Shown here in pieces: positions 27,112 to 38,655 of a DNA stretch of 64,000 bases. Where the stretch lies: the NCBI GenBank assembly GCA_002269645.1, contig NIVC01002882.1:62001-126000 (forward strand), read 5' to 3'. The first letter of the stretch is position 1, and every line of letters starts with the position of its first letter. The position numbers and the translations under genes were made by a program. The notes under the pieces are model-generated. The model saw nothing but the letters and a program-made list of their open reading frames with translations. It did no database searches and had not been told where the DNA came from. The stretch comes from Macrostomum lignano (lineage: Eukaryota).

Positions 27112-27852
27112 ATGGGACACGAGGGGCCCTGCTGTCACGGCTGCTCCGAGTGCAGGTGAGACTGGGGGGGGGACTGAATGACCTTATCCACGTGGTTTCA
27201 TAATCTTATGAGCTGGCTCATGAACTCACTCATGAACTCACTCATGAACTCACTCATGATCTCACTCATGAATTCACTCATGAACTCACTCATGAACTCA
27301 CTCATGAACTCACTCATGAACTCACTCATGAACTCACTCATGAACTTACCCGCTCCCCCACTCACAGGACAGTCCGCAGCTACCAGAAATGGAAGTTCAG
27401 TGCCAGCCAGTCGAGGCCCTGCTGCTGCCTGGCAGTCCCCTCCAAACGGTGCTGCCACGCGCGGGGGTGCAGCAAATGCGACAAGAAGGTGTCAGTTCAA
27501 GTGGCATCACTGCAATATTGGGATATGAAAGTCTCTGCGAAACTAAAAAGGAAGAAGAAGAGGGAGAGAGGGAGAGGTGGATAGAGAAAGAAAGGGAGAG
27601 GGAGAGAGGAGGGAGAGAGGGAGTCGGGAGGGAGAGAGGGAGAGGGCGAGAGGGAGAGAAGGGGAGAGAGAGTGGAGGGAGAGGGCGAGTCAGTGTCGAT
27701 TACGAGCGCAGATGCCAAGTTCTTACTGAAATCTCACACCCCTTAGCATTTTTAACTCAACTCCCCTTAACTCCAATTGCAGCCTGAAGGGCTACTGCTG
27801 TTGCAAGCACTACTATTTCAAGACGCACAGCGAAGCCTGCGGGATTCTTTAA
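27112..27852 (+). CDS. Type-A Cys/His-rich gene A1 (exon-2 donor unresolved)
   Basis: TATAAAA at ~27055; exon 27112-27155, exon from 27368, last exon 27783-27852: MGHEGPCCHGCSECRTVRSYQKWKFSASQSRPCCCLAVPSKRCCHARGCSKCDKK...LKGYCCCKHYYFKTHSEACGIL*; intron 1 holds a 12-mer repeat (27217-27345). Confidence 0.55.
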
Positions 27853-28402
27853 TCTAAGAAGTGCCATGATGCTTCTTGACAAATCGAACAAAACACTGAC
27901 ATCAAGTGCAACGTCATATTTTTTTATACAAAACCTTTTTTTCAAATCTAAGCGCTACGAATTACGAGTATCATAAAAACTACGAAAAAAACAAATCTAG
28001 GCGCGCATACATATTTTAGCTACTGTTAGTAGTCTGTAAAGAAATTTGCTTTAATAAGATGTTGAATTCGATTGATAAAATGACAATTTGTTGTTTACTG
28101 AATTATTGATGAGTGTTAATTTTTTCTTTAAGTCTCGTAACAATTATTATCTCATAAAATAATTTACATGTAACTGGATGCAATAAATGCATGATACTTT
28201 ACTTACTTAAGCAGTTGCCAGCATCTCAGAACTATACTTTTTACATACTGCTGCTCCTAGGAAAAGTCCTAACAACAGGGTACTTCCCTGTGATCGCGCG
28301 ATTACATGCATACATAAATTGTGAACAGCATGGCAGTGTATCTGGAAAAGAGCTTTGTCTGCACACGTTTAGAAATTATTTAAAGTCAAACATTGTCTAA
28401 CA

Positions 28403-29475
28403 ATGGAGTGCTGCAGAAGACGCAACTGCAATTATTGCTTGTGAGTCACTCGCTATCGAGGTATCTTGACTGGCTGTCTCACAGGTTAGGAGTGTAATAT
28501 TGCTTGTCTAACAGGTATAACCGAGTTTTTCTGAAAGGTATTAACCTTCATCTAACAGTTAATAACCTTTCTAACAGGTATTAACCTTCGTCTAACAGGT
28601 GTATTAACCTTCGTCTAACAGGTATTAACCTTTATCTAACAGGTGTATTAACCTTCGTCTAACAGGTATTAACCTTTATCTAACAGGTGTATTAACCTTC
28701 GTCTAACAGGTATTAACCTTCGTCTAACAGGTGTATTAACCTTCGTCTAACAGGTATTAACCTTTATCTAACAGGTGTATTAACCTTCGTCTAACAGGTG
28801 TATTAACCTTCGTCTAACAGGTGTATTAACCTTCGTCTAACAGGTATTAACCTTCGTCTAACAGGTATTAACCTTCGTCTAACAGGTATTAACCTTCGTC
28901 TAACAGGTATTAACCTTTGTCTAACAGGTGTATTAACCTTCGTCTAACAGGTATTAACCTTTGTCTAACAGGTGTATTAACCTTCGTCTAACAGGTATTA
29001 ACCTTTGTCTAACAGGTAATAACCTTCGTCTAACAGGTATTAACCTTCTCTGACAGGTATTAACCTTTATCTAACGGGTAATTACTTATCTAGCAGGTAT
29101 TAACCTTCATCTGGCAGGTATTAACCTAACCTATTTACCATATGCATATAAATTTCTACGCAATCTCAACGTAGAAGAATCGAAGATTACGCCATCATGC
29201 GCGATGTTCGAGTACCCTGCTGCTGCAGACACCCCGGCTGGCTTCATCCAAATGATCTGGATTCCTGCTGCTACAACCGCTGGTGCGAGCTCTGCTATGA
29301 TCGAAATTGGTAAGTTATTAACTGATTAAGCAATCATTTCCTAAAGATGCTCAAAGCTGAAAACCTGCATCTTGAACTTGTAAATTTCAGCTTCGACGGT
29401 CCCAGAAGACGGAACAGTAGAAACGGCTATCCTCATTGCTGTTGCAAGCACCACTTTTATGAGTACGAGAGCTAA
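28403..29475 (+). CDS. Type-A Cys/His-rich gene A2, 85 aa
   Basis: Exons 28403-28440, 29175-29309, 29391-29475, both introns phase 2: MECCRRRNCNYCLRIEDYAIMRDVRVPCCCRHPGWLHPNDLDSCCYNRWCELCYDRNCFDGPRRRNSRNGYPHCCCKHHFYEYES*. Confidence 0.82.
28505..29130. repeat. 21/23-bp tandem repeat (TTAACCTTCGTCTAACAGGTA) in A2 intron 1
   Basis: Direct reading. Confidence 0.95.
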
Positions 29476-29937
29476 GAAGATTGGAAGCAAAAGTGGCTGG
29501 AAAATTGATTAAACCAATATCTGCAATATGAGGTAAACTGACACAGAATATCGGTGAAATTCTGAATTAATTGAGTCAAATACTCATTTTCACATTTCTG
29601 TTTTGATTTAACTGTTGAAATCGGTTATAAACGCGGTAGATCCCAGTTCTATTTTTAGCCTTGAGCGCTTTCCAATTTCTATTTTTAGCACAGATTTCAG
29701 TGTACAGATGTCAGTGTTCCATGTACTTTATTTTGATTTAATGCACGAAATTCTACTTCATATTTACGGTATTTAAAGTTTATTTTTTTAATAAACTAGC
29801 TAATTGTGATCGGTTATACATATAATCCATGCCATCTGCATCACTTTAACTACATTTAAAAAATACGAGTCACTTTTAGAGCTTTGCATTTCTTTGAGTA
29901 TTGTCAACTCGGGGCGGTTAAAACAGTGGATCATTAT

Positions 29938-30628
29938 AGAATAGGGTAAATACCTGTAGAATAGGGTAGATCCCTGTAGAATAGGGTAGATCCCTGTAGA
30001 ATAGGGTAAATCCCTGTAGAATAGGGTAGATCCCTGTAGAATAGGGTAAATACCTGTAGAATAGGGTAGATCCCTGTAGAATAGGGTAGATCCCTGTAGA
30101 ATAGGGTAAATCCCTGTAGAATAGGGTAGATCCCTGTAGAATAGGGTAAATACCTGTAGAATAGGGTAAATACCTGTAGAATAGGGTAGATCCCTGTAGA
30201 ATAGGGTAGATACCTGCAGAATGGGGTATATTCTGTAGAATGGGGTAGATACCTGTAGAATGGGGTAGATTCTGCAGAATGGGGTAGATCCCTGTAGAAT
30301 AGGGTAGATCCCTGTAGAATAGGGTAGATCCCTGTAGAATAGGTTAGATACCTGTAGAATGGGGTAGATCCTGCAGAATGGGGTAGATCCCTGTAGAATA
30401 GGGTAGATACCTGTAGATTGGGGTAGATACCTGTAGAATAGGGTAAATACCTGTAGAATGGGGTAGATACCTGTAGAATAGGGTAAATACCTGTAGAATG
30501 GGGTAGATCCCTGTAGAATAGGGTAGATACCTGTAGATTGGGGTAGATCCCTGTAGAATAGGGTAGATACCTGTAGATTGGGGTAGATACCTGTAGAATA
30601 GGGTAAATACCTGTAGAATGGGGTAGAT
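29938..30628. repeat. 20-bp tandem repeat (CTGTAGAATAGGGTAGATCC)
   Basis: Direct reading. Confidence 0.95.
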
Positions 30629-36661: not shown

Positions 36662-37367
36662 ACAGGTACAGATCGACATGGATTGTTTGACTACAGAACC
36701 ACAATAATACGTTTTTTATAGTGTTATTTCACAATACGTCCCGTATTGTGATTATCAATAACCATTTCACTGCTAACTAAAAATCTTGAGTACCAAAACA
36801 TAAGACGTCATTATTTTCAAAAGGCGATAACAATACGAGTCATTTTTGAAGAATTCATAATTCACTTTCGGTTGCTGAAAGAATTCACATTTTGGATAAT
36901 TTTTTACCAATTCAACAAATAATCGATTGTCATATTGATGCAAGGAAGTGTATTAAAACAAATATACAATTATTCGGAATGCATGCGATTTCACATTCAT
37001 ATCTTTTTGAATATTTTTTTCCGCGTTCTAGCTTGTCAATAAATCGTTATGAAAACGAAAACTCTGAAAAACGTCAGTACAAAACATTCAATCTACTCTT
37101 TAGGTGTCTTTTCGGACACAAACACGGTAGATTCCTGTTCTATTTTAATAAGTGACAAAACCATCGCCTATGGGTTGGCCTCTTTTAGGCGTGACGCTTT
37201 ATTTTAATTTAGCAACAAAATTCAACTAAAATTCAAAATAGATTTGGGAAGTCGTCTATACATGCTGATGTGGCACCGTTCATAGTGACAATGACTTTTG
37301 AGAAACACTCAGTTACTCATTCATGCAGTCACCCACTCAGAGAACTAAGACACACTATTGACAAATA

Positions 37368-37775
37368 GGCAGACAGACAGGCAGACAGACAGACAGACAG
37401 ACAGACAGACAGACAGACAGACAGACAGACAGACAGACAGACAGACAGACAGACAGACAGACAGACAGACAGACACTAAGACAGACAGACGGACAGACAG
37501 ACAGACAGACACTAAGACAGACAGACAGACAGACAGACAGACAGACAGACAGACAGACAGACAGACAGACAGACAGACAGACAGACAGACAGACAGACAG
37601 ACAGACAGACAGACAGACAGACAGACAGACAGACAGACAGACAGACAGACAGACAGACAGACAGACAGACAGACAGACAGACAGACAGACAGACAGACAG
37701 ACAGACAGACAGACAGACAGACAGACAGACAGACAGACAGACATACAGACAGACAGACAGACAGGCAGACAGACA
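37368..37775. repeat. (GACA)n microsatellite
   Basis: Direct reading. Confidence 0.98.
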
Positions 37776-38216
37776 CTAAAATGTTAATCCCCCTTGAGCC
37801 ATGGCATCTCAGCAACTCCCCCTTGAGCCATGGCATCTCATCTTTTGCTATAACAACATCTTTAGACTCTTGGAGCAGAAAAATCTGTGGTTGAGTTGAA
37901 GTTAAAATCGCTGAACTGGTCCTTGTTAGAAGATGAAAAATGAAACTATTTGAGTTTTGCAGCTGAAAAACTTGCAGAATGTTTAATAACGAAAACGGCA
38001 TTTATTATCAGCAGTGAAATGTTTGTCAGTTTCATAGCTCTATTTAGCCATGAATCAGTTGAACCAGAGCTACTGGGAACAACCGCTTTAATCTTACAAT
38101 GCAGTACCGTGTAAACGGGTGTAGCTCGTATATGAATGGGATGCATTTTTAGTTTCCTTCAATGCTAGAAACTGCCTCAAGGAATTGCTTTTTGTTACCA
38201 GCTAAAAAGCTTAAGA

Positions 38217-38655
38217 ATGGTGGACTGCTGCAGCGGCAAATCGTTGTTTTTTTGGGATTGCGAAAATTGCACGTAAGTCAATCCAGCTGACATCTGAAAT
38301 TATTTTAATTTGAATTAGTCACTAAAAAGCGCCAGAGATATCCTGCTAACTTTCAGTAAGGTGAAGGACTTTGCCGCATTCTGGCACAATAATGGAGGCA
38401 ACGGAAGACTGTCTTGCAAGTGTTGCAAGCACTTCAGCAGCAATGCTGGATGCTACATTGTTTCCAACTGCAATGTGTGCAAGAAGTTCGGCTGGTGAGG
38501 ATGCCATGGGCAAATACTAGTACTAGCAGCTCTGTATATTTTTCCATACACATTTCTGTTGTTCTTACTCAAAATTTGGTTAAAATTTTAGTGCCAAAGA
38601 CAAGGACCACCCGAACTGCTGCTGCAGGCACTACTACATGTCTGGAGGACGATAA
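38217..38655 (+). CDS. Type-A Cys/His-rich gene A6, 85 aa
   Basis: Exons 38217-38272, 38357-38494, 38592-38655, phase 2/2: MVDCCSGKSLFFWDCENCTKVKDFAAFWHNNGGNGRLSCKCCKHFSSNAGCYIVSNCNVCKKFGCAKDKDHPNCCCRHYYMSGGR*. Confidence 0.8.

Follow-up and report, generated by a model that had tools for sequence, protein, structure and literature searches.

Six tandem genes with a common cysteine scaffold

We analysed a stretch of 64,000 nt from the Macrostomum lignano genome (positions 62,001 to 126,000 of contig NIVC01002882.1, assembly GCA_002269645.1; hereafter the window), which carries a tandem cluster of six small genes for cysteine-rich proteins that we call type A. The six loci, A1 to A6, extend along the plus strand from the A1 start codon (ATG) at window position 27112 to the A6 stop codon at 38655, and each consists of three exons that together encode a protein of 78-103 amino acids. 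All 12 introns run from GT to AG with pyrimidine-rich acceptors and interrupt the reading frame in phase 2, and in every one of the six genes intron 1 splits the codon right after the first CxxC motif. The end of exon 2 is equally regular, as it falls four codons plus two bases past the last C-x2-C in A2 to A6 and three codons plus two bases past it in A1. A first-pass annotation, made from the letters of this DNA, had described six tandem three-exon genes sharing a Cys scaffold, with phase 2 in all resolved introns and the same exon 2 boundary in A2 to A6, and each of these features was recovered when we rebuilt the gene models. We conclude that the structure shared by the six genes is not due to chance.

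The first gene, A1 (27112-27852; exons 27112-27155, 27368-27490 and 27783-27852), would encode 78 residues ending in the CaaX box CGIL, and its model is uncertain. A2 (28403-29475; exons 28403-28440, 29175-29309 and 29391-29475) encodes 85 residues, and A3 (31848-32324; exons 31848-31915, 32002-32154 and 32236-32324) encodes 102 residues once a single T is removed. A4 (33841-34637; exons 33841-33893, 33976-34134 and 34538-34637) encodes 103 residues and ends in a second CaaX box, CSVL. The array is completed by A5 (36217-36661; exons 36217-36266, 36349-36495 and 36571-36661), with 95 residues, and A6 (38217-38655; exons 38217-38272, 38357-38494 and 38592-38655), with 85. The basal intron length is 75-97 nt, and the longer introns contain repeats: a minisatellite in intron 1 of A1 and of A2 (734 nt in A2, with a 21-bp unit), GA-rich repeats in intron 2 of A1, and a tRNA-like short interspersed nuclear element (SINE) in the 403-nt intron 2 of A4.

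An alignment of the six proteins contains 13 invariant columns, all of them Cys or His (12 Cys and one His; C7, C8, C11, C14, C33, C34, C43, C49, C52, C61, C62, C63 and H65 in A1 numbering), whereas pairwise identity outside the Cys-Cys columns is only 12-44%. This agrees with the earlier description of a fixed scaffold whose inter-Cys residues differ strongly. The motif given in the first-pass annotation holds in general but not in each detail: A1 does not have the CC-x-x-H element, A2 has M in place of the scaffold W, and A2 and A6 have CC(C)-x-H in place of CC-x-x-H. The paired sets of CxxC and His ligands, comprising two CxxC knuckles and the CC(C)-x-H elements, are invariant across all copies, and an aromatic position (Y/F-x2-3-W) is conserved shortly after the first CxxC knuckle.

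The public Mlig_3_7 gene models derive from transcripts obtained by RNA sequencing, by way of StringTie/TACO and TransDecoder (PMC5730564). They reproduce our coding spans and proteins of A2 (P0005, BOX15_Mlig004807g1), A5 (P0007, PAA54602.1, BOX15_Mlig028464g1) and A6 (P0004, BOX15_Mlig002597g1) identically, and the frame-corrected A3 protein is the same as P0001, which is annotated on the duplicate contig NIVC01000905.1. Most type-A members are transcribed and spliced as modelled. The concern that transcripts might use other exon boundaries or frames, or that the genes might not be transcribed, is largely answered by the exact matches of A2, A5, A6 and the A3 duplicate. The gaps in the public annotation are that A1 and A3 are missing, that the frame of A4 differs and that five or six micro-genes described below are uncalled.

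We found two more copies of the type-A cluster, L001 on NIVC01000905.1 and L002 on NIVC01000551.1, and the type-A Cys scaffold is retained in every additional gene copy seen in them. Exons 2 and 3 of A2 are gone from L001 (compared with window positions 28632-29479). The L002 interval 6125-18715 has exons resembling A2 exons 2 and 3 placed after its A3 paralogue, together with extra A4/A5-like copies.

The duplicates bear on each of the three genes whose models need comment. In A3, a run of seven T at 32240-32246 breaks the exon 3 frame, whereas both L001 and L002 have six T; the gene is otherwise 100% identical to L001 across the remaining coding sequence and the introns, and it is unannotated on NIVC01002882.1. 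The extra T is either a homopolymer error of the long-read assembly or a very recent frameshift. Splicing from a phase-0 donor (TGC|GTAAAA) to the acceptor TTAG|GAATC would also restore the frame, but the six T of both duplicates and the standard junction used by P0001 led us to reject this alternative and to prefer an error or mutation of one base within the T run. The public model of A4 (34086-34680) is a 63-residue open reading frame (ORF) in a different frame that shares intron 2 with ours. Since the frame that carries the Cys scaffold is conserved in all copies, and its CaaX box in L001 and L002, we take the public frame to be an annotation error. For A1, agreement with the scaffold depends on a weak donor, GGT|GTCAGT (27490/27491); exon 1 is missing from the L001 and L002 copies of this gene, which may be decaying.

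A TATA-like box precedes the ATG of each type-A gene by 26-111 nt (TATAAAA at 27055 in A1), and AATAAA or ATTAAA signals follow the stop codon at 33-377 nt, so that each gene resembles a transcription unit of its own. In three of the genes the motif GGTACTGCCT stands exactly 14 nt upstream of the TATA-like box, within the plus-strand promoter segments 31733-31763 (A3), 33722-33752 (A4, with TATAAAT) and 36082-36112 (A5, with TATAAAA), and a second copy of the motif, usually inverted, lies 30-45 bp further upstream in each. When one mismatch was allowed across the 64-kb window, seven of the eight matches to GGTACTGCCT fell in the promoter regions of A3 to A6 (31703-31763, 33676-33752, 36039-36112 and 38099-38135), a clustering that argues for shared regulation. 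This motif arrangement suggests that A3 to A5 are co-regulated.

Upstream micro-genes and the history of the family

Upstream of A1 to A6, on the same strand, we found six additional terminal exons with the CCC-x-H element, which are parts of unannotated two-exon micro-genes of two further types, B and C. The type-B gene B1 (8321-8484, plus strand) encodes 28 residues in two exons, MASNCCPLGIFCPFCW|IAWSQGRCCCRH, separated by a phase-2 intron right after CxxC. A second type-B gene, B2, also of 28 residues, is at 23128-23291 (+), and a degenerate type-B copy is at about 5310-5480 (+). The type-C genes C1 (12439-12692, +; 53 residues) and C2 (21045-21881, +; 50 residues, with a (TCAG)n microsatellite in its intron) combine a Cys module with a C-terminal hydrophobic helix (19-residue hydropathy 2.3-2.4), and a type-C fragment is at about 7150-7290 (+). 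In all type-B and type-C genes the single intron is in phase 2 and lies right after CxxC, at the position of intron 1 in the type-A genes.

The module of types B and C, CC-x5-CxxC-x8-CCC-x-H, has nearly the same spacing as the C-terminal half of A1 (CC-x4-CxxC-x8-CCC-x-H), and from its pattern a type-A protein can be read as two such modules in series. We built a hidden Markov model (HMM) of the B and C modules and scored it against each half of the type-A proteins, N-terminal and C-terminal, with 300 shuffled sequences for comparison. An end-to-end alignment was obtained for the C-terminal half of A1 only, whose score none of the 300 shuffles reached; the C-terminal halves of A6 and A3 were marginal (reached by 2/300 and 8/300 shuffles, respectively), and the N-terminal halves were not significant against shuffles. 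As the HMM comparison supports only the C-terminal half of A1, the proposal of an internal duplication rests on the pattern and on the intron position.

A more specific history would be that the type-A proteins represent a previously undescribed metal-binding mini-fold, which arose in the Macrostomum lineage by exon-level tandem duplication of a gene for a 28-residue, two-exon microprotein (CC-x5-CxxC | x8-CCC-x-H), with functional type-B and tail-anchored type-C copies still beside it. We consider this history unlikely as stated. If it were true, the locus would be a living series from a microprotein to a modular protein.

We asked how fast the type-A proteins have changed by comparing synonymous and nonsynonymous differences. 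Synonymous sites are saturated between the six genes of the window (proportion of synonymous differences, pS, 0.64-1.0), and the duplications are therefore old; age alone accounts for the divergence of the loops, and no rapid evolution is needed. Between recent duplicate pairs, the ratio of nonsynonymous to synonymous differences (pN/pS) was 0.15 for A4, 0.07 for A5 and 0.30 for A6. The comparison of A3 with its L002 copy gave a pN/pS of 1.06 from about 19 changes, which spare the first 61 codons and are confined to the second half of the protein, a distribution that suggests a mosaic or gene-conversion history. The counts behind these four ratios are small, at 4-19 substitutions per pair among M. 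lignano copies. In these sequence comparisons, purifying selection appears better supported than diversifying selection, and the rapid evolution implied by the first-pass annotation finds no support in the saturated synonymous sites or in three of the four recent pairs, the A3/L002 pair being near 1.

Separately from the promoter motif, we observed an element of about 24 nt, CGCGGTAGATYCCNGTTCTATTTTTAG, downstream of A2, A3, A5 and A6 (29635-29655, 32906-32926, 37126-37146 and 39450-39470), always on the plus strand (four matches against 0.01 expected). It recurs in the duplicates (L001 at 3467, 6849 and 10950; L002 at 7757, 10731, 13395 and 16058), where the flanking sequences do not align. 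CGCGGTAGATYCCNGTTCTATTTTTAG resembles the 20-bp unit of the minisatellite at 29937-30628, and also GAACAGGGTAGATCC, which precedes the type-B micro-genes by about 165 bp (8146 and 22957). This putative element might act as a terminator, as an insulator or as a site for a transcription factor. Upstream of the type-B genes the sequence is highly conserved and includes TGACGTC, a site resembling a cAMP response element.

Probable cellular location, proposed metal binding and alternative roles

Taken together, the properties of A1 to A6 lead us to favour, tentatively and at somewhat less than an even chance, the reading that they are intracellular metal-binding mini-proteins, most likely binding zinc, that act at the cytosolic face of membranes and carry variable surface loops. 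They would form a tandemly duplicated family of small (78-103 residues), basic, intracellular proteins, each with two consecutive CC-x(n)-CxxC ... CC(C)-x(1-2)-H modules (about 14 Cys and at least two His). By binding several ions of Zn(II), or of another soft metal, these residues would hold a compact fold, leaving the loops between the metal ligands free to vary. Expression would be driven from a TATA promoter of each gene's own, with possible co-regulation of A3 to A5 through their shared upstream motif. CxxC pairs together with His are typical zinc ligands.

The location inside the cell is suggested by the N-termini. Within the first 30 residues of the type-A proteins, hydropathy revealed no signal peptide (best 9-residue hydropathy at most 1.2; longest hydrophobic run at most five residues), the first Cys pair lies at residues 3-10 and charged residues begin at positions 2-14. 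An in-frame stop codon lies 15-51 nt upstream of every type-A ATG with no in-frame ATG between them, which leaves no room for an N-terminal extension and effectively excludes a signal peptide. A toxin or defence-peptide role is therefore unlikely. The first-pass annotation had likened the genes to rapidly evolving defence, toxin or reproductive peptide families. Of that likeness the fixed scaffold with variable loops stands, whereas neither secretion nor rapid evolution is supported. Its reproductive part may still hold for a role inside the cell, for instance in sperm. Defence peptides, toxins or seminal-fluid peptides that are secreted, knotted by disulfides and subject to diversifying selection would fit this scaffold and the A3/L002 pN/pS of about 1, but they fit neither the N-termini, nor the odd number of Cys (15) in A1 and A2, nor the saturated synonymous sites and the low pN/pS of the other three pairs, and we hold this explanation to be extremely unlikely.

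The position at membranes is suggested by the C-termini. A CaaX box with L as its last residue directs geranylgeranylation, and the boxes of A1 (CGIL) and A4 (CSVL) both persist in the diverged L001 and L002 copies, whereas A2, A3, A5 and A6 have none. These boxes, together with the C-terminal membrane helix of the related type-C micro-genes, point to the cytosolic side. We propose that A1 and A4 are probably geranylgeranylated at these C-terminal CaaL boxes and that the shorter type-C relatives would be tail-anchored by their membrane helix; the type-A proteins themselves have no membrane segment by hydropathy. In addition, the type-A N-terminus, with M-x(1-2)-CC ahead of basic residues, offers a plausible palmitoylation site and resembles known dual-palmitoylation motifs. 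The same features would be expected if the proteins were multiply S-palmitoylated membrane scaffolds without a metal cofactor, with the Cys clusters as lipid attachment sites. However, palmitoylation requires neither an invariant His nor CxxC spacing, and most of the Cys lie within hydrophilic, loop-rich sequence, so that we judge such scaffolds very unlikely and retain metal-binding proteins with a cytosolic, membrane-proximal action as the preferred interpretation.

The composition of the proteins (isoelectric point, pI, 8.2-9.0; Cys 14-19%; 4-6 His each; 7-11 aromatic residues, or 9-13%, including the conserved Y/F and W positions) bears on two further explanations. The CC, CCC and CxxC motifs, the small size and the tandem array would suit a tandem amplification of genes for metallothionein-like proteins that buffer or detoxify metals. 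However, the Cys content is lower than in metallothioneins, the aromatic content and the conserved W/Y positions set type A apart from them, as does the invariant His, and CaaX boxes and other lipid or membrane anchors, present in some members, are not a metallothionein feature. As no metallothionein family in Pfam matched at E ≤ 10 either, a metallothionein-like role seems quite unlikely to us.

Alternatively, the proteins could be structural components within cells, for instance in sperm or in the copulatory stylet, which is formed intracellularly, and could be hardened through disulfides or other cross-links of their Cys. Protamines, keratin-associated proteins and the sperm mitochondrial Cys-rich protein would then be their analogues. 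Small, basic, Cys- and aromatic-rich proteins without a signal peptide, encoded by a lineage-restricted tandem family most of whose members are transcribed, are in line with such a role. On the other hand, generic cross-linking would require neither ligands spaced so exactly nor an invariant His, and the presence of CaaX boxes and of membrane-anchored relatives points towards membranes, not towards chromatin or a matrix. We therefore regard a structural role as improbable and continue to prefer metal binding.

Database searches placed the family within M. lignano. Scans of types A, B and C against Pfam-A and NCBIfam at E ≤ 10 gave nothing meaningful, a profile search with types B and C gave no match at E ≤ 10, and a sequence search of the PDB with A4 and a profile search with an eight-sequence alignment gave nothing except a chance hit (E 0.86). 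A word-indexed homologue search with the type-A profile yielded six matches, all of them M. lignano hypothetical proteins, and a full HMM search of 1.84 billion representative proteins matched only four clusters, again all from M. lignano; a metagenome scan with exon 2 of A5 found no relative. The type-A family thus seems restricted to M. lignano in the sense that no relative is detectable in the searched libraries, in which other Macrostomum species are probably poorly represented. A literature search returned no papers on these locus tags, on small Cys-rich proteins or on metallothioneins in Macrostomum, and the type-A gene IDs were not found in the supplements of two M. lignano papers. We conclude that the family is real, lineage-specific, partly annotated and functionally uncharacterised.

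One automatic name required a decision. UniProt/UniRef attach DUF2769 (PF10967) to A0A1I8G096, which is P0001 and hence A3. We rejected this assignment because the identical sequence had no Pfam-A match at E ≤ 10 and the precomputed Pfam field of the entry is empty. Papers that mention DUF2769 concern small archaeal proteins, and the likeness to A3 is one of automatic name only.

Several points weigh against metal binding at membranes. Runs of adjacent Cys (CC and CCC) characterise metallothioneins, or sites of palmitoylation and cross-linking, more than they do classical zinc fingers. No metal-binding family was detected in Pfam, in NCBIfam or, by sequence or profile, in the PDB, and a CaaX box is present in only two of the six members. 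The absence of a signal peptide was judged by hydropathy and not by a dedicated predictor. Finally, AlphaFold2 run on the eight-sequence alignment returned an unreliable model (mean predicted local distance difference test score, pLDDT, 44), a value too low for a fold comparison. This low-confidence model places helices at H14-32, after C13-x2-C16, and at H59-63, after C58-x2-C61.

We compared the proteins with known systems that share some of these features. The heavy-metal-associated isoprenylated plant proteins (HIPPs), which are small and cytosolic, unite Cys metal-binding motifs with a C-terminal CaaX box and form expanded lineage-specific families. Their likeness to type A is a functional analogy without an evolutionary relationship: HIPPs carry the HMA fold (MxCxxC), whereas type A matches neither HMA nor any other Pfam family and has the CaaX box only in A1 and A4. 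Metallothioneins share with type A the small size, the richness in Cys, the CC and CxxC motifs and, often, the tandem arrangement, and differ from it as set out above.

A likeness in spacing is offered by zf-CHY-like cross-brace or treble-clef fingers (CC-x5-C-x2-CH), in which two adjacent Cys bind different zinc ions. Type A repeats CC-x(3-7)-C-x2-C followed by a predicted helix twice, but there is no match to these fingers by HMM or by PDB sequence. We know of no counterpart for the terminal CCC-x-H element. Types B and C recall PLAC8 and CYSTM proteins, which are small, rich in Cys and associated with membranes, in having CC-x4-5-CP-x-C in a hydrophobic context, and type C would be tail-anchored like CYSTM. 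In CYSTM, however, the Cys lie within the membrane helix, whereas those of type C precede it and type A has no hydrophobic segment, and none of the three types matched these families in Pfam at E ≤ 10.

If the metal-binding reading is right, the locus would provide a compact and experimentally tractable case of a lineage-specific protein family being built and diversified, in a species that offers transgenesis and RNA interference. It brings together a Cys/His module, a conserved phase-2 intron, an apparent doubling of the module, alternative anchors (CaaX box or membrane helix) and a common promoter element. Animal genomes commonly contain small Cys-rich families that are specific to one lineage, and the case has no bearing on a major open question.

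Repeats and other sequences around the cluster

The M. lignano genome is reported to have a repetitive portion of more than 50%, with simple and tandem repeats at 15%, and to contain big duplicated blocks of at least 95% identity that have been ascribed to extra chromosomes (PMC5730564). The 41 strong tandem-repeat rows in the window and the two extra copies of the type-A cluster are consistent with this repeat-rich, duplicated genome. Nearly every intergenic spacer of the cluster, and several introns, carry a different minisatellite (units of 12-59 bp) or a tetranucleotide microsatellite (for example 25782-26794, 28536-29127, 29937-31126, 33044-33632, 35014-36002, 37370-37775 and 38889-39216), which is likewise in keeping with the repeat-rich genome.

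The cluster is surrounded by further ORFs and exons on both strands (5473-6315, minus; 9875-10450, plus; 13637-14260, minus; 19406-20299, plus; 24683-25171, plus; 42460-43077, minus; 49911-50324, plus). Those derived from transposable elements are fragments of an endonuclease-reverse transcriptase, a piggyBac-type DDE, a Harbinger-type DDE and RNase H (two fragments); the others are an exon encoding a fibrinogen C-terminal domain and a calmodulin-like EF-hand ORF. Three long minus-strand ORFs between 56.5 and 62.6 kb had no Pfam match. An Rfam scan of the entire window gave no match, and ARAGORN called no tRNA anywhere in it. The tRNA-like SINE within intron 2 of A4 spans about 34190-34440 on the plus strand, and an inverted copy of it lies about 12 kb upstream, at about 22190-22420.

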